This document shows positions 1 to 10,000 of a stretch of 64,000 bases of DNA, piece by piece (the stretch's first letter is position 1; each line of letters begins with the position of its first letter). Under the pieces are notes generated by a model. The model made no database searches. It saw nothing but the letters and a program-made list of their open reading frames with translations, and was not told where the DNA came from. Source of the DNA: Pelomyxa schiedti (taxonomy: Eukaryota; Protista; Evosea); assembly GCA_020536535.1 (NCBI GenBank), contig JAHLWZ010000277.1, positions 1 to 64,000 on the forward strand, read 5' to 3'. Position numbers and translations under genes: made by a program.

Positions 1-3000
1 CCCTACAAAACCCAGCTCCCTTCATGTACCTGGTAACTTTTCCAAGTCCTAATGAACATTAGTTTCATAGTTTCATAGGAAAGCTGCCAACCCCCCAAAG
101 CACAAAAAAAGAAATTGCAACCCCTCAATCTTCCGGTGTTGTTTCAGTCTCTCTTTCCAGTATTACTACAGTAGAACACATTAAAACTTCAATTCCACTT
201 ACTGCTGCACAAAGAGAGGACAATCAGAGAAAAGCATGTCTTCCAATTTTACAGGTGCGAGATGAGTTCTGTCTGAGACTCCTCAAGGAGCATGTCATTG
301 TATGTGTTGCGGAGACTGGATCTGGGAAAACAACACAGCTGCCACAATACTGTGTGAAGCTGTTAAAAGAGTCCTCTCAAGTAGGGATTGTAGTATGTAC
401 CCAACCACGAGCAATTGCCTCGATTTCTGCTGCAAAAATAGTGGCAATGGAATTTGATGGGTGCATTCCAGGCCAATCTATTGGTTATGAGGCAGAAGGA
501 ACAAGTATCCAAGGCAGTGAAATTGTATTTTGTACTGATACCTGTTTTGTTCGCAAAGCTTCGGGCAATCCCCTTCTGCAAGGTTTGACAGTGTTGTGTT
601 CTATCTGTATTGTGTAATATGTCAAGTGAGTATTAAGTACTATAACCATAGGCTCTTCCTCTAACCTGAGAAAACTAAATCAAAGGGGTTTCTGTTGTGA
701 TCATTGATGACGCGCATGAACGGTCTCTCCATACTGACATTGTTCTTGGGATATGCAAACAAGTGCGAAAACAACGAACCAAAGATTTTTATATTGTGGT
801 GGCTTCTGACATGATTGATGAATCCGCATTCCTGTCATTCTTTGAGTGCACGTCACCAGCAATCAAGGTTCCTAGTACACAGTTGCAGGTTACCCTTGAA
901 TATATCCCACCACAGTCACTGCCAGGGGAAACAAGTAACGAGGTGGTCAGTATAAATAAACTTATTCGAAATCATATCATACCCACAGTCATAGCGAAAC
1001 TCATTCAATTTCCCACTGGAAATGCTCTTGTTTTCCTTCCAGGACAAAGTGAGGTGGAAAAAGCTATTCAGATATTTAAACAGCAGAAACCTCCTCAAAA
1101 AAAATGGTCTGCCCTGCCCCTCTTTGGATCGCTTCAACCTAAATGGCAACAACTTCTATGTTTCGAGGAGAGAAAACCAACAGATAAACGGCTCATTATT
1201 TTCTCCACCAATGTGGCAGAGGCTTCCTTGGCTTCTGGTAGGATACCCTTGGTGTTTGACTCTGGCCTGGAAACCGAGTTAGTATATGACTCACCGAGAA
1301 ACATTACAGTGCATGAACTACGCTACATCTCTAGTGCTTCGTCGGAGCAGAGAAGGGGGATTGCTGGAAGAGCGCGCAATGCTCATTGTGTAAGACTTCA
1401 TGGGAAAGGGGCAATAACAAGACAATCCATTGAACCTGAGATATTGCGCTCCTCTTTAGATTCCATTGTACTTCAATTGAAAGGAATGAATCAAGACCCA
1501 TTGGCTTTTCCTTACATATCTCCACCACCTCGCCAAAGCTTGGTAGATTCCATTTCTCAGATGGCGCGCCTCCAACTTCTGGACTCATTGGGGCAAATAA
1601 CACCCCGAGGCATCCTTATATGCAGTCTTGAGTTCGAACCACGCTTGGCCAGTTTTGTACTGGCAATAATGGATAAGCAGCCTAGTTATCTCGACACTGC
1701 TCTTATTATATCGGCCATACTCAGTGTTCCTGGCAGCATTTTTTTTATGGATGATAAGTCAGACCGATTTGCAGTAAAAGGAAATATGAGCTCTTTTGAC
1801 AGTGACCTTCTCTTCCTGCACGATGTTTATATCCGTTGGTGTCAGGCCGGTCTCACCGTCAACGGTAATTGCATCACTTGTAAGAAGCCCTCCAAAAAGG
1901 CTTTCTGCCAGTCCTGCCGCCCTTCATTCTCCTCAAGCAATGGCCTCAACAGTAAAGTACTGACAGCTGTAGAGTCACTTATTCAAACCACTAAATGCAC
2001 TCTCTCAGGGCCACAGCTCACTGAGGCACCTCAGCTTCCTGTCGCTACTGTGCCCTTCAACAAGTCTATAACTGAACTCATTATTTCTGACAATCTTAGT
2101 GGTCCTTTCCTTGACAAACTTGTGGAGGTCTTGGTTCCCCGTTCCCCTGACAAGGGTGTACGCATTGTAAGTCAAGAAACCAGGGCCAGTATCGCCTCTA
2201 CCTCATGTGTTCTCCAGCACCATAGTGAATCTCGCTATTACTTGGCTATGAAAATAGTCAAACTTCCAAGTGGACAATACTTTGTGGATCAACTTCACCC
2301 AGTTTCTGAACAGACTCTGTTGAAATGTGACAGTACGTGGTGCAGTAAGCATGGTGTTCCCTCAGTGCCGTATATGGCTAAAGAGTGGCCAGATGTAGGC
2401 TATGTATTTGAAAACTTGTGCCAAGAGAAGTGTTCCCCAAGACAAGGAAAACCAGAGAGGTGGCACACCATAATCCATGACAATGCCAGACATACTCTTA
2501 AACTTTTTTGTCCTGAAAAATTTCGTTCAGAGCTAATTGCAGAGGTGGAGCAGTGCATAAAAGAAGAACAAATCAATATGAGTGCCTTCAAAACCCAATA
2601 TGTGGTAGGAAATGGTGCAGCACGTGTGACTTTTGGTCAAGGCCTTACAGTATCAGATGTTGCCTTGATAACAACAGAACAACAGTTCACATTTGATCAC
2701 CTCCCAGCTATTTCTAATACCCAGGATTTTAAACAGTGGGTCTCTAATGAGTTGCACCTATCAGAAACTGAGATTGGTTGGTGCAAGTTTGACACAGAAA
2801 AACGCAGAGGGGTCCTCCTTTCTTCCGACCTCCCTGTTACAGTCAGCAAAATTCGTACCAATTACTCCAAATGGCAGAGCTCCCATCTGGGTGCTCTTAA
2901 TAGTGCAACTAATCTTACAATCTCTGCAAGGGAAGATCATTACGGAAAGCAAATTCGGGCTACAACAAATGCAACGTTTACCTGCGAACAAGTAATGGCT

Positions 3001-6000
3001 GCCTTCCCAGGCTGCATTCATGCCACAGCCGTTACATCTTCAACTGTATTAAAAATTCTTGGATTGCCCAGTATGGTGACACGCCAAGCTATCTCCTCCA
3101 TGATCTCAGGTCTTGGTGCTTTCAACATTTCTGTAAAACCCGCGAATAAAGCTGGCAAAGTTAATGCTTATGTGAATCAAGTTCAAGAGAACCAAAAGGG
3201 TCCGGTGCTACTAGCATTAAGCCCGCTCCAAAAACCCACTGGCTTCTTATGTGAGCCCCCAAGATTTCAATGGGATACCGACTACATATGGGTGATCACT
3301 TTCTCATCCACCTGGGAAACTGAAAAGGCTCTGGAACTCAACAAAAGTTCCCACACCTTTCGTGTTCTTTCATCCAACCAAGTAGAAATACAGTACCCTG
3401 CCCTTTTCAATCTTCCTGACATGTTCCAAAGAATCAATAGCAAATTTAAGGAACCTGTTAAGTTTGACTGCAGAGAAGGGAATACTAGAAATGCATTTGT
3501 TACTGTTTCAGGGCAGCCTACTAGTTGTGAAAAAGCATGTGAGTTGTTGCTATGCTGTACTCGCCCAATAAAGTTGCGAGTGGGCGAAAAAGATCCCCAA
3601 CGTTTTCTCATGTTTTCTGAGCTTGTTGAAAAGCATCTTCTTTTAGCCTGGGCCACAGAATTAAAGCTTCAAGTTTGCACCAAATCAATTCCTGGGCACC
3701 ACAAAGTGATTGAAGTGACAATTTTTGGCCCAGTATCTCAACAAAGTCTTTTCATGGTGAAAGTTGGTGACTATGCCAACCAATTTTCAACGCGGTTTGC
3801 AATGCTACGATTCCACTCTCTGGACAACAATAAATTCCAGATGGGACATGCAGCATGGTATGTGTTAAAAACCATTTCTGAGAAGTACAACTCTACTGTA
3901 CAATTTTATGAACACTTATCAGTGGTTGCCATTGAGACCCCAACGAAACAAAGGACTGACGAGTGCCGCATTGAAGTCCTCCAAACACTTAAGGATAAAT
4001 GCAAGGTTAGGGAAGTAGAACTGTCTTGCGTTTGTTGTGGATGCCCAGGTAATCTGTCTCTCCGTCTCTGTGACCACTGTTACTGCACAAAATGCCTTGA
4101 AAAACACGTACAATCAGGAAAATTTCCTGTGAACTGTGTTGCTTGCGATAGCCCTATTTTATTGAATGACTTGCAGGAGCACTTATCTAAGGAAGTCTGG
4201 AAAAAAGCTTGCAACCTCAGCGTTTGTACTCTTCTAAGATTGAAGCATGTAGACGGGATATCGGAATGCCCCACGAAGTGTGGGTCAGTGTTGCCCGCAA
4301 GAGCTCTTTACCAAGAGTGCCGCGGATGCCATAAAAGTGTCTGTCCTATTTGCTCTACTATCGATGAACCAGGCCACATAGGCCGAAGTTGTGGAGCTTT
4401 CCAAGAATGGAAAAGTGATATGGTGCATTGCCCGAGTGGCTGTGGTGAGCTAGTAAGCAAAAAGAGAATGTACCATGCTTGCCAAAATTGTGGTGTCATG
4501 GTGTGTGGTGGTTGTGGCATCTGCAACAATGACTGGCATCTTTCGCGCTCCTGCCAGCAATTCACTGATTACAAAAATGACATGGTGAAGTGCCCCGACA
4601 AGTCGTGCAATGGGTTTGTAAGTAAAACAGCTGGGCCAACGTACTGCAATTCATGTGCCAACTCTGTCTGTGGTGCTTGCCAAACCATAAACAGTGAACT
4701 TCATTCTGGTCGCAAGTGCGTTGAGTACCGCCGATTGAATTCTCTTGGTATGACAGTTTGCCCAACCCGGTGTGGTGGTGCTATTTTGAAAAGCTATTCT
4801 CAATGTGACACATGTAAGAAAATGGCATGTGGTTCTTGTGGGCGTGTTTCTGAGCCTTTGCATTCTGGTCGGAGCTGTGAGCTAACAACAAAACTTTTTT
4901 CTGAAGGTAGAATGGTCTGCCCCTATGGTTCTTGCAATGGTCTAGTCTTCAAAGCGAAGCCCTCTGCTTGTACAGTCTGTGGATACTTTGTTTGTGTTTC
5001 TTGTAACATAGCATCATTCAGAACTCACCATATTGGTCGGACATGTGTGGAGTATAAGGAATACTTAAAACATGGGGCAATACTGGACAAGTTAATCTCA
5101 GATTCTGATGCATGGGCCCACAGAAACTGGGATGTTACAATGCCCTCCATACAACAGATTATTCCCAACCCTGGTTTGACAAAGAATTGCCAGGCACTAC
5201 AGAAATTCCTCAAGATGGTGCCAGGTGGGTTAGTTGCTCTCCCAGTCAGCACTTTCTTCGCCTGGCATGGCTCCACTGAGACTGGAATCGTGCAAATATG
5301 CGATGAAGGCTGGGATACAAGCAAACGCACGGGCCAAGCCTACGGCCCCGGAGAGTACTTTGGCATTACTTCAGCCATTTCTCAAGGATACTGCAAAACA
5401 GGAAACTTCATGCTCGTTGCACTCGTTATCCAAGGATCATGGGTGAGCAGGATCCGGGATTTCTGCTATGTAGTGAACAACCCAACCGGTGCAGACACAG
5501 GTTCCTATTGCCTGCCATTAAGTGTGGTTGTATTTGGAGTCAACAAGCAGCCAACATTCAAGCTGTACCCAAGTGCCACTCCCTCGTCCCACAATTCATC
5601 CTCAACAGCAGGGTCTACGCCAACAACATCTTCCCCGACCTCAGCATCCACAACAACCACACCGACGTCAAACTCAGAGTGGAAGATGCCGTTTTGGTGG
5701 CACTGGATGACAAACGAGCGGGCGTACGAGCCGTACACGGCCGCTGTCAATCTGATAATCGAGCGGATGCACGAGGACTACGTTCGCGGAAGCTCCTTCA
5801 CCGCCCTGACGCCGCCGATCCGGCGCTACGTCGACGAGAAGCACCAGCCGTACGCGATCGACTTTGCCAAGGGCACGCAGACCAACACCGCGACGTCGTA
5901 CGCGCGCTCGATTATACGCAAGGTAGTTCCTGTGTCTGGAAGCTGCAATTGGCAGTGGCAGGACGATTCTGGGAAGTGGGTGCCCTTTGAGCTTCTGTCT

Positions 6001-6270
6001 CAGGATCTAATCGAGAAGGCGTACCAGGCTTATAGACAGGGCAAACCCGGGGTATACACCTTTTCATTTAAACAAGTCACAATATCAATCTTAACAGACA
6101 CTACCATAACCCCACTGAACTTCTTTAAGCGCACAACTGTTTCTAACTCAAAACAGACCATTGACAATATGAGGTTTCCCGGCAGCCCAGACCCATACTC
6201 CCTGGATTTCATCGCCGGCACACAAACAAACGCCAAGACAAACAAAACCAGGTTAATAAGGAGGGTGTGA
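1..6270 (+). CDS. DEAH/RHA-type helicase-like protein fused to RING + 5 IBR-like zinc fingers + PARP-type ADP-ribosyltransferase + WWE domains (5' end outside window)
   Basis: Walker A ETGSGKTTQ and TQPR in ORF 255-617. Intron 583-685 joins in frame to VIIDDAHERS. Further motifs: VFLPGQ, STNVAEAS, QRRGIAGR, PEILR; RING from about 4027; five CP..C..C..C..C..C..H....C units 4267-5065; WHGS...YGPGEYF; two WWE-like units (W.W......Y/W.PY/F). Frame is open upstream to a probable intron at 33-78. Confidence 0.85.
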
Positions 6271-7018: not shown

Positions 7019-10000
7019 ATGGGCTGCCCTCCTCTCATAACTGCGCAGGGGAGCCTCTCCATGGAGAGCTACACGCAGGACCACTCTTACACCACTGATG
7101 ACTTGGCTTATGGGAATGTCAACGTTTCTGCTTCTTCTACTCACCCAATTTCACCACCACCAAAAGTTGCTCACAATCCTCCCCCTCCTGTGGCAAATAT
7201 ACCACCCCCACCTAGTGCTACTAGTACCACAACTACCAATTCAGGCCCTCCTCCTGAGCCACCTGTTTCTGTAAGTGCTCAAAAGACTGACACAGCTTCT
7301 TGTGGAATTCCCCCACCTTCCACAACTCCTCCTCCCTTGGCTGCAGTTACCCCTGTTCAGCCACCCCCAATTTCCGTTATCGGCCCTCCACCAGTTGAAA
7401 CAATAAGCCCTCCACCAACTACAATAATTGAACCTCCACCACAAGTTTCCTCGATCAATCCCCCATCAGTCGGTCCTCCTTCACAGACCCCTGGAATCCC
7501 ACCTCCTCCTGTTGCTGACATTAGGCCTCCTCCACCTGCTACAAGCCAGTGTGCACCACCAACCACGACTATACAGCCACCCCCAGTCGCTACAATCAAC
7601 CCTCCCCCACCAGTAGTGTCTAACACTATTCTTCCACCACCAGTATCTAGCGCAATAATTGGTCCCCCTCCACCGGTAAGCGAACCTGTAATCAGACCTC
7701 CAGTGGTTGCACCTCCTTCATCACCAGTAGTTCAATCTGTGCCAGGAGCTACGCCACCCTCAATAGGACCTCCTCCAGTTCCTCCTCCATCTATTGGACC
7801 GCCAAGTTCAGCACCTGCAGTTGCACCACCACCACAATCAACTCCACTCGGCCCACCCCCACCAGTAGCTCCACGTACAGTCTCACCACCTTCTGCCCTG
7901 CCCCCTCCTGGCTCCCCACCACCAGGCTCCCTCCCGCCGCCTGGGCCCCCGCCACCTCTAGGACCTCCTGCAAATTCTAGTACTGTTCTCAGCTCGGCAT
8001 CAAGCATGGCGCCTACTACAAGCAACATTCCTGTGAGGCGGATAGCTCCTCCCCCAGTACAAATTCATTTTTACCTTAATGTAAGTAAATTTTCTGATGT
8101 AGAGCCCTGAGCAATTGGCGCTTATACAACAAAAAGTAGCAACTTTTTACAACCCTGTGTGTCCTTTGAAGGTGCCAACTTATGTTAATCCTTCCCTCAG
8201 AACGACCCAAGAATACAACGCAGTCAACATATAATAAGGACCTGGCTACTGCGCAGAGCAAGAGGTTAATTTCTTTTCTTTTTTCAATGGACTCATCTTT
8301 GAAACAAGCCCAAGTCAATATTCCTGCAAGAAAAGCAGCATTCAAAAAATTAGTTTTTGCAGAAAGAGAACTTGTTCGCTTGTTGAAGCTTCTAGTTTTA
8401 CATTATATTGTCCCTATTGAGCGAGGCGATGCAAGTGTATGAGCGAGAAACATTAATTTCTTGTTCTGATGTGCCACAAGGCCACAATAACTCAAACGGA
8501 TATCACAAATCTGTGTGGGGAAGCAAGACAACTTCTAACCCTTCACACAAAAATTTTGAAGTGCTTTGATGATGTATATCCATCTCAATATTTAAACAAC
8601 CCACTTAATCATTCAGTTGGTTTCTAATTGGCCCTGTGTTGATGGTGTTGGGCGAGTTTTTTTGGACTCTGCGATAACCTCTGAATTAGCTGTGTATGGT
8701 AAGTAAGTATTTCATCTGACTTGCATATCTTACTCTTGGAATCAGGTTCCTATGTCGAACACTCTCTCGTGCATTCTGAGACTTTAAAACGTCTCCAAAC
8801 AACTGATCACATTTTTGCAGGGTGGGTTCAAGAGGTACTCTTCCATATTATTCACTTTAAATATGACCTAAAGCAGACCTTTCTCAATATGGGCGAGGAC
8901 AAAGATTTTGGTGAATTACTTGCCTGCCCACTTAATCACATGAATGTCTATGCAAGTATCATGCGAGAGCTGATTTCCAATACTCCTGTCAGCAGTCCGG
9001 ACTTCTCTACTCTCACTGAAGCAGAAGCATATTTGCAGCAAGCGTGCAACGTAACCCTAAGTTGACAGTGGTTTTTGTACTCACATGTGTAGGTCGTCAC
9101 TGCTGCCAGGGAAAGGTCCACTAGTAAGAAGAGATATGTGGAAGCCGTATTGAAAGTCGGAGGCTTTCAACCGGTTGCTTTAAAAACTCTGCCCATACCT
9201 TTAACCCTGTATAGACAATTTTCCCTGAAGACTCCAGCCGGCAACTGGTTGCAGAATTCGATTTTTCGTTCATGAAGAACAAGAAGCCTACACCACTGTA
9301 CGCACTCCTATCACTCACAGAGCCACTCACTCCATAAAGGCATGGCATTCTTTTCTCTGACCAACTTATTTTACTGTCATGCAAAAAAGACAAAAAGAAA
9401 GGCGATACCTTTAAGAGGAAGTTTGTTGTGAAAATGTCTGAAATAACAGAGCTTGCCAACGAGCCTGGAGGTAATTTAATTTCATTATTTCCCCCCTTCT
9501 CACGCCGCAAAGATTACTTATTGCCTTGCAGATCTCACATCTATGTCTGTTACCATCAACAAGAAAACCAAGTACATTTTTAAAATGAACACAAACAACA
9601 CTCGCAATCTTGTTCTGGGTGCTTTGAGGGAACTCTATGATAAGCTCCATGTATGCTATCTTCATCTTTCTGAAATCACCACTTATTGTACCTAGAGGAA
9701 ACGATTTGGTGTGTCTCCACTGAGAGAAACTAAAAATACCAATTAATTGAACAGTTTTTGGATGTCTGCTCGATGAGTGCCTGCAAAGTGAGGAGAGAAT
9801 GGAAATTGGTGTGCCCCTTGTTGTTGAACGTGGGCTCCTCCAGTTGGAACTAGGTGCCACCTCTTTCTTTCTTTTTTTTTGTTACCCAAAACCTAGATTT
9901 GGATATAGTTGGTATATTCCGAATTCCAGGCCAAACAAACGCTGTATCTAAACTTAAAAAGATGGTTCAAGGTAAAACCTACACTCGAAATAAAACGAAT

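Follow-up and report, generated by a model that had tools for sequence, protein, structure and literature searches.

What occupies the place of the catalytic domain in an RBR-type ubiquitin ligase frame that carries no such domain? RBR ligases are defined by the thioester step of their Rcat (RING2) domain, and the question is raised by a gene of the anaerobic amoeba Pelomyxa schiedti. The gene stands at the very start of the window, i.e. the first 64 kb of contig C277 in the 52-Mb assembly. A preliminary description, made from the sequence alone, read it as a helicase-RBR scaffold in which RING2 had been replaced by extra IBR units, an ADP-ribosyltransferase (ART) domain and WWE domains. Our comparisons point to a more specific answer, in which a PARP-type ART domain followed by a WWE pair fills the Rcat slot of an old helicase-RBR scaffold. 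The window carries the 3′ four-fifths of one plus-strand gene, which fills positions 2-6270 (Table 1). The 5′ part, which comprises a low-complexity region and RRMs in the paralogue P0002, is cut off at the contig start.

The RING1-IBR part is of the RBR type. A family profile of RING1 plus the first IBR, aligned in a single stretch (positions 3-139 of 139), matched HOIP (5edv, 4e-10), HOIL-1 (8eaz, 5e-10) and ARIH2 (7od1, 4e-7), and these ranked above ordinary RINGs. The best match of IBR unit 1 was the HOIP IBR (2ct7). Pfam detected IBR in five stretches (27.7 bits), and all five tandem units keep the full ligand pattern C-x3-4-C...C-x2-C-x4-C-x2-C-x7-8-H-x4-C, with pairwise identities of 27-42%. 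The canonical Rcat pattern (C-x2-C-x5-14-C-x-H-...) was absent from the window protein and from about 200 relatives, and the catalytic Cys-x-His was found in none of the five IBR units. As a positive control, the Rcat pattern was matched in four of six DEAH12-like helicase-RBR proteins (e.g. GGCQHMEC in an oyster protein). The last IBR is separated from the ART domain by nothing more than a helix of about 27 residues. From the structural model, this helix is placed where RBR ligases have their IBR-Rcat helix.

The relatives of the scaffold were examined through its helicase and through the 540-residue middle region that separates the OB fold from RING1. The helicase search used the paralogue helicase as query and took in proteins between about 1420 and 4520 aa long, a range that leaves out smaller DEAH helicases (DHX15, for example). 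In the top tier (387-956 bits), nearly all proteins carried RING-IBR and then ART, and according to Pfam most carried WWE too. The next tier (258-281 bits) contained DEAH11/12-like proteins (IBR, IBR_1, KH_DEAH11), tied with bacterial HrpA. In an oyster member of the DEAH12-like group, Pfam marked DEAD, Helicase_C, OB, RRM, two KH_DEAH11 and IBR, with IBR_1 (the Rcat) at the end. When the middle region was compared by hhalign with those of 21 DEAH12-like proteins, the alignment was collinear over 509 columns with RING left out (98.2%, E 6e-14) and covered 563 columns with RING included (96.7%). The scaffold of helicase, middle region, RING1 and IBR is thus homologous to, and of common descent with, that of the DEAH11/12-type helicase-RBR ligases. 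A passage of PMC2904391 treats the helicase subfamily of RBR ligases as ancient.

Because DEAH11/12-type proteins with the homologous scaffold keep a true Rcat, the reading of ART-WWE-WWE as its replacement holds. The preliminary description was right in the helicase-RBR scaffold, in the RING followed by five C6HC units and in the lack of a catalytic-Cys motif in any of them. Its view of the extra IBRs as part of the replacement did not stand. Most relatives have a RING, one IBR and then the ART domain, while Archamoebae and a few lineages known from metagenomes have arrays of two to seven IBRs. Since a single IBR before ART prevails, the four extra units are a later, lineage-specific internal duplication outside the Rcat replacement.

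The ART domain was recognised by several methods. Pfam PARP scored 32.7 bits against a cut-off of 26.7. In the PDB, a profile built from 19 relatives matched PARP12 at 6e-7, followed by PARP10, PARP3, PARP14, PARP15 and ZAP (range 6e-7 to 3e-5). The AlphaFold2 (AF2) model of the domain had a pLDDT of 89.7. In Foldseek it resembled PARP10 (8e-6), PARP12 and PARP15, and VIA-align superposed about 140 residues on PARP15, PARP10, PARP12 and PARP14 with Z of 12-13 and a root-mean-square deviation of about 3 Å. In this superposition, model residues 158-168 (CLPLSVVVF) lie on the last strand of PARP15, PARP14, TNKS2 and PARP10; therefore, the preceding strand, CYVV, is the strand that bears the catalytic Glu in polymerases. 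The model accordingly positions a Cys (open reading frame residue 1590) at or next to the position of PARP1 Glu988. This register is supported by relatives in which Ile, the residue of PARP10 and PARP12 at that position, fills the same column. An alternative register, which would make FCYVVNN the “YDS” strand and assign the Glu position to LSVVVF, is contradicted by the last-strand superposition, by the absence of conservation after VVxF in the family and by the Ile in the Cys column of relatives.

Conservation in the family was counted by columns. A profile scan of 1.8 billion representatives gave 168 clusters below 1e-30 and 849 below 1e-10, and the best 159 were used for the counts. The NAD-pocket columns were near-invariant in these 159 representatives (H 156, G 155, Y 158, S 152, Y 150). 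NAD+ binding is argued for because the pocket residues are kept. The third triad position lacks the catalytic Glu (PARP1 E988, for poly-ADP-ribose elongation) and has Cys instead, which was found in all 19 close relatives; among the 159 representatives, the column contained Cys in 114, Ile in 12, Ala in 7 and Ser in 3. A zinc site made of ART cysteines is unlikely, with a single Cys column above 70%. The Glu just before the triad Tyr (GEYF, 5353-5355) is present in 156 of the 159 representatives and absent from PARP1, PARP10 and PARP12. According to passages of PMC2964712, PARPs without the triad Glu are mono-ARTs or inactive and not polymerases, and the third triad position of other mono-ARTs is a variable aliphatic residue. 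By these rules the Pelomyxa domain is classed as a putative mono-ART or an inactive domain, and not as a polymerase.

The two WWE domains scored 80 bits in Pfam. As a tandem in a single stretch, they matched best the tandem WWE of DTX1 (8r5n, 4e-7), followed by TRIP12 and HUWE1. Thus the PARP-type domain with its WHGS, GPGEYF, SQGY and FCYVV motifs, the missing triad Glu and the presence of two WWE-like units all agree with what had been proposed, and the listed motifs were all met at the stated positions. The raw translation of the second WWE unit has to be corrected, since an intron of 105 nt (6052-6156), which keeps the frame open in this copy, is translated along with it and adds 35 extra residues. 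The counterpart of this intron in the paralogue has stops and indels.

The gene is real, expressed and under purifying selection. Its open frame comprises 1822 codons and is intact over 5.5 kb. The deposited model (P0001, 1809 aa) begins within the helicase and is named only “pre-mRNA splicing factor RNA helicase”. RNA contigs from a single-cell RNA-seq run of the same study cover the RING, IBR, ART and WWE regions, and one of them joins position 6051 to 6157 with GT..AG ends. Such a junction is impossible from genomic DNA, and the contig therefore derives from a spliced transcript. In Mastigella eilhardi, a Trinity transcript contains a complete frame of 2531 aa (46% identity) that runs from the RRMs through helicase, RING, five IBRs and ART to two WWEs. 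Against the paralogue, the ratio of nonsynonymous to synonymous substitution rates (dN/dS) was 0.18 overall, 0.05 in RING1, 0.16 in the IBRs, 0.14 in ART and 0.20 in the helicase, and reached 0.5 in the Ser/Thr/Pro-rich linker. A pseudogene is ruled out by the intact frame, the spliced RNA contig and the overall dN/dS. The proposal that the domains form one chain is confirmed by the splice and by the same domain order in the complete Mastigella transcript, which together rule out separate genes.

The helicase of the window copy departs from its relatives. The helicase core of the paralogue matches DHX15/Prp43 at 2e-71, which leaves no doubt about fold and family. In the window copy, motifs II, III, V and VI are degenerate (DDAH for DEAH, SDM for SAT, TNVAEASLA in motif V and QRRGIAGR for QRxGRAGR), and the changes hit the catalytic Glu in motif II as well as an arginine finger, while the consensus is kept in P0002 and 15 or more relatives. 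Because the motor motifs are degenerate, this copy probably binds RNA without efficient ATP-driven remodelling, rather than unwinding it. The middle region of the window protein had no match in Pfam, KH_DEAH11 included. Its AF2 model had a pLDDT of 85; as a profile it matched RRMs (PABP, 8e-17), and Foldseek aligned the model with multi-RRM, KH and ACT arrays. A word-based search with this region (residues 430-1245) matched the paralogue only, and homology to other families came through profiles only. An RWD domain before RING1, which is drawn for some RBRs, was seen in neither Pfam nor Foldseek.

Relatives with collinear similarity over the whole length were found from amoebae to rotifers and Hydra. 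The full architecture, as seen in the paralogue and the Mastigella transcript, runs from a low-complexity region through RRMs, a DEAH/RHA helicase, a string of RRM/KH-like modules, RING1 and five IBRs to ART and the WWE pair. Members occur in Archamoebae (Pelomyxa, Mastigella, Mastigamoeba), in metamonads (Paratrimastix, Chilomastix, Kipferlia and isolates TZLM1-RC, TZLM3-RCL and GEM-RC1), in the oomycetes Aphanomyces and Lagenidium, the chrysophyte Pedospumella, Paulinella and the diplonemid Namystynia, and in animals (the bdelloid rotifers Adineta, Rotaria and Didymodactylos, and Hydra vulgaris). Judged by these matches, the family spans at least five eukaryotic supergroups and some animals.

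The P. schiedti genome has four copies of the gene. P0002 lies 98 kb downstream (C277:94000-104050) and encodes a protein of 2585 aa whose N-terminus is rich in Gln and Pro; it carries two RRMs, and its helicase motifs are canonical. The 3′ ends of this copy and the window copy, i.e. the WWE region including the intron, are nearly identical. Their synonymous divergence (dS) is 0.10 there against about 0.9 elsewhere, which suggests a recent gene conversion between the two. The third copy (P0166, C721:124848-129494, minus strand) keeps RING, two IBRs and the helicase, and its ART reads WYGS at the triad His and lacks the Cys; its reading frame stops some 20 residues past the ART, apparently with no WWE domains. 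The fourth (P0004, C374:15362-17521) has five IBRs and an intact ART, and its helicase is strongly degraded (GGAGKS, DEAQ, TEAAESIFT, ERMKRASL). The copies seem to have divided or lost functions, since they differ in whether the helicase or the ART part is degraded.

Other relatives of the helicase scaffold differ in their ends. P0188 (Adineta steineri) has PF18171, PF18139 and PF25508 on the same scaffold, with no detectable RING-IBR or ART. P0211 (isolate TZLM3-RCL) has a 3′-5′ exonuclease domain (PF01612) in addition to RING-IBR and an ART match at its end, and P0173 has a CCCH finger and keeps RING-IBR-ART. These cases hint that effector ends are swapped or added on the helicase scaffold.

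The reading that we favour, and hold to be probable on balance, is that of a helicase-RBR frame in which Rcat has been replaced by an ART with an NAD pocket and a WWE pair, coupling mono-ADP-ribosylation with ubiquitin on RNA. The helicase and the RRM-like parts would hold the protein on RNA or ribonucleoproteins (RNPs). The ART would use NAD+ to mono-ADP-ribosylate a nearby target, which may be a protein, the enzyme itself or a phosphorylated RNA end. Phosphorylated RNA ends can be modified by PARP10, PARP11 and PARP15. The WWE pair would then retain its hold of the ADP-ribose, and RING1-IBR would position a charged E2~ubiquitin beside the ADP-ribosylated site. Ubiquitin could then reach either the target that carries the mark or the ADP-ribose directly, skipping the thioester on Rcat in a way much like that of the Deltex RING-DTC enzymes. 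RNA surveillance or defence would be the likely context.

Several points weigh against this coupling. Compared with PARP10 and PARP12, about 25-30 residues are missing from the stretch that joins the fourth strand to the Glu strand, and therefore the acceptor site is unlike that of any studied PARP. ARTs without the Glu can be inactive, as are PARP13 and PARP9. The degenerate helicase motifs of the window copy stand on the same side, and to our knowledge RBR RING1 domains are not known for direct E2-to-substrate transfer. That the protein acts in defence or surveillance is guessed from the types of domain it has.

A bolder version, which we consider unlikely, would make the protein a one-chain writer of a hybrid ubiquitin-ADP-ribose mark on RNA or RNPs. 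The RBR front end would feed E2~ubiquitin to the PARP-fold substitute of Rcat, which would either ADP-ribosylate a phosphorylated RNA end or a protein, with the ADP-ribose then ubiquitinated in place, or relay ubiquitin through its conserved active-site Cys. If true, this would be a third solution beside Deltex-PARP9 and Legionella SidE, present from amoebae to rotifers and Hydra.

Among the rival explanations, the one that survives best, itself rather improbable, holds that the ART is non-enzymatic. It would be a sensor of NAD+ or ADP-ribose as in PARP13/ZAP or PARP9, and the protein an RNA-bound, E2-recruiting scaffold, with the ADP-ribose of other PARPs setting its location or activity. The third triad position without Glu and the shortened acceptor region are in line with this, and the two WWE readers point to reliance on ADP-ribose made elsewhere, for which the genome, with at least 44 PARP-domain matches, could be cited. 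The C721 paralogue lacks both the triad His and the Cys, so that a dead ART is tolerated. However, inactive PARPs typically lose nicotinamide-pocket residues, and here H, G, Y, S and Y are each kept in 150-158 of the 159 representatives across eukaryotic supergroups; the low dN/dS of the ART domain also weighs against this reading.

It is less likely still that the window copy is a duplicate in decay or with a regulatory role, whose crippled motor would leave it to serve the intact paralogue as a decoy or partner instead of working as an enzyme itself. Its DDAH, SDM, TNVAEASLA and QRRGIAGR stand where the paralogue and 15 other relatives are canonical, the paralogous copies show differing losses, and the 3′-end conversion with the paralogue is recent. 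Nevertheless, the gene is spliced and expressed with its frame intact over the 5.5 kb, the helicase itself has a dN/dS of 0.20, and RING1, ART and WWE retain every family-invariant residue.

The weakest alternative, which we regard as very improbable, is that the ART does the job of Rcat, its Cys forming a thioester with the ubiquitin that the E2 on RING1 delivers and relaying it while NAD+ or ADP-ribose in the pocket selects the acceptor: the ART lies exactly in the Rcat place after the linker helix and the Cys is kept in 19/19 close relatives and 114/159 representatives where other mono-ARTs have a variable aliphatic residue (a passage of PMC2964712), but there is no His two residues downstream as in Rcat, a buried strand readily accepts any of Cys, Ile, Ala and Ser, and, because RING-IBR-bearing members carry Ala or His at or beside this column and at least one carries Ile (P0115, RING-IBR-positive with no strict C6HC match), the Cys is not essential to the architecture, and these members weigh against a relay as a family-wide rule.

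Table 1. Features of the helicase-RING-IBR-ART-WWE gene in the window (positions of the forward strand).
Feature	Position	Strand	Basis or remark
Tail of preceding exon	2..32	+	tblastn of paralogue P0002 residues 583-595
Intron	~33-78		between exon tail 2-32 and exon from 79
Exon: linker and start of DEAH/RHA helicase RecA1	79..582	+	~72% identity to P0002 aa 593-795
Walker A AETGSGKT	309-332	+	inside exon 79..582
Intron, GT..AG, 103 nt, phase 1	583..685		splice restores ...NPLLQG|VSVVIIDDAHER, collinear with P0002
Very long exon	686-6051	+	single open frame continued in 6157-6270
Helicase core	686..2046	+	Pfam; then winged-helix and ratchet within span
Motif II DDAH	706-717	+	
Helicase_C	~1006-1374	+	Pfam
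Motif VI QRRGIAGR	1348-1371	+	
Putative OB-fold-like end of helicase cassette	2047..2367	+	position and family-wide conservation
Middle region: string of small alpha/beta (RRM-like, KH-like) modules	2368..3999	+	AF2, profile, Foldseek, hhalign
RING1, C3HC4, RBR type	4024..4191	+	SCVCCGC at 4024
Five tandem C6HC IBR units, ~54 aa each	4264..5046	+	starts 4264, 4426, 4588, 4756, 4915
Long linker helix, last IBR to ART	5047..5124	+	AF2 model residues 3-29 helical
PARP-type ADP-ribosyltransferase domain	5149..5535	+	Pfam, profile vs PDB, AF2, Foldseek, VIA-align
ART motifs	WHGS 5263, GPGEYF 5344, SQGY 5380, FCYVV 5461	+	
ART residues	His 5266-5268, Tyr 5356-5358, Ser/Tyr 5380-5391, Cys (Glu988 position) 5464-5466	+	
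Ser/Thr/Pro-rich linker	5572..5676	+	translation
WWE domain 1	5698..5919	+	Pfam WWE; motif-list unit start 5680
WWE domain 2, first part	5947..6051	+	Pfam; DTX1 tandem-WWE match; second part 6157-6267
Intron, GT..AG, 105 nt	6052..6156		spliced RNA contig; NCBI model P0001 removes same intron
Last exon: second part of WWE domain 2 and stop codon 6268-6270	6157..6270	+	

Two side observations concern the rest of the genome and of the window. The PARP-domain matches of the P. schiedti genome include giant open frames (about 1,830 to 2,560 aa) with pentapeptide repeats and a PARP domain, one of them with HEAT repeats; such frames lie at C800:133578-140438 (minus strand) and C1157:4093-9999 (plus strand), and also on C346 and C797. 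In the window itself, a plus-strand frame of 363 codons (7019-8110) consists nearly entirely of proline-rich repeats (PPPP, PPV) and has no Pfam match. Its stretch has a GC content of 53-58% and a GC skew of about -0.45.

The domains are familiar, and as far as could be found their arrangement, the Cys triad and the replacement of Rcat are undescribed. Keyword searches in the text of two PARP surveys (PMC2964712, PMC4245714) met no mention of a PARP linked to a helicase or IBR, and full-text literature searches for the architecture found nothing relevant. The case is one in which the Rcat of an ancient helicase-RBR protein was swapped for a PARP-fold domain with ADP-ribose readers, and the product was kept under selection. 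Crosstalk between PARPs and ubiquitin is an active field, with Deltex, RNF146 and ubiquitin-ADP-ribose hybrids as examples. If the domains cooperate, the family would offer a natural single-polypeptide system for coupling ubiquitin transfer and ADP-ribosylation on RNA. Hydra vulgaris, Adineta vaga and oomycetes are tractable sources of its members.

Known systems share parts of this arrangement. RNF146/Iduna likewise combines RING and WWE, and its ubiquitination is steered by ADP-ribose binding; however, it is small and has one WWE and no ART, IBR or helicase. The Deltex proteins (DTX1-4, DTX3L-PARP9) are alike in the tandem WWE, in a RING with an NAD/ADP-ribose-binding domain and in the link between ubiquitin and ADP-ribose. 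They have a canonical RING and DTC in reversed domain order and no helicase, whereas the Pelomyxa family has an RBR RING1-IBR and a PARP fold. The clade 3 mono-ARTs (PARP10, PARP12, PARP14, PARP15 and ZAP/PARP13) have a like fold, the triad His and Tyr and the Ser/Tyr pocket, and no Glu, and PARP7, PARP11, PARP12, PARP13 and PARP14 carry WWE in the same protein, as the Pelomyxa family does. Compared with clade 3, the Pelomyxa family has Cys and not Ile/Leu at the third position, an invariant Glu in GEYF, an acceptor region shorter by about 25-30 residues, WWE after and not before the ART, and an ART fused to RING-IBR and helicase. The closest counterparts are DEAH11 and DEAH12 of Arabidopsis (helicase or Plant I RBR subfamily) and the DEAH12-like proteins of molluscs and protists, in which helicase, OB, RRM/KH-like modules, RING1 and IBR follow in the same order. 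These ligases end in a true Rcat (Pfam IBR_1, GGC-x-H), whereas the Pelomyxa family ends in ART-WWE-WWE.

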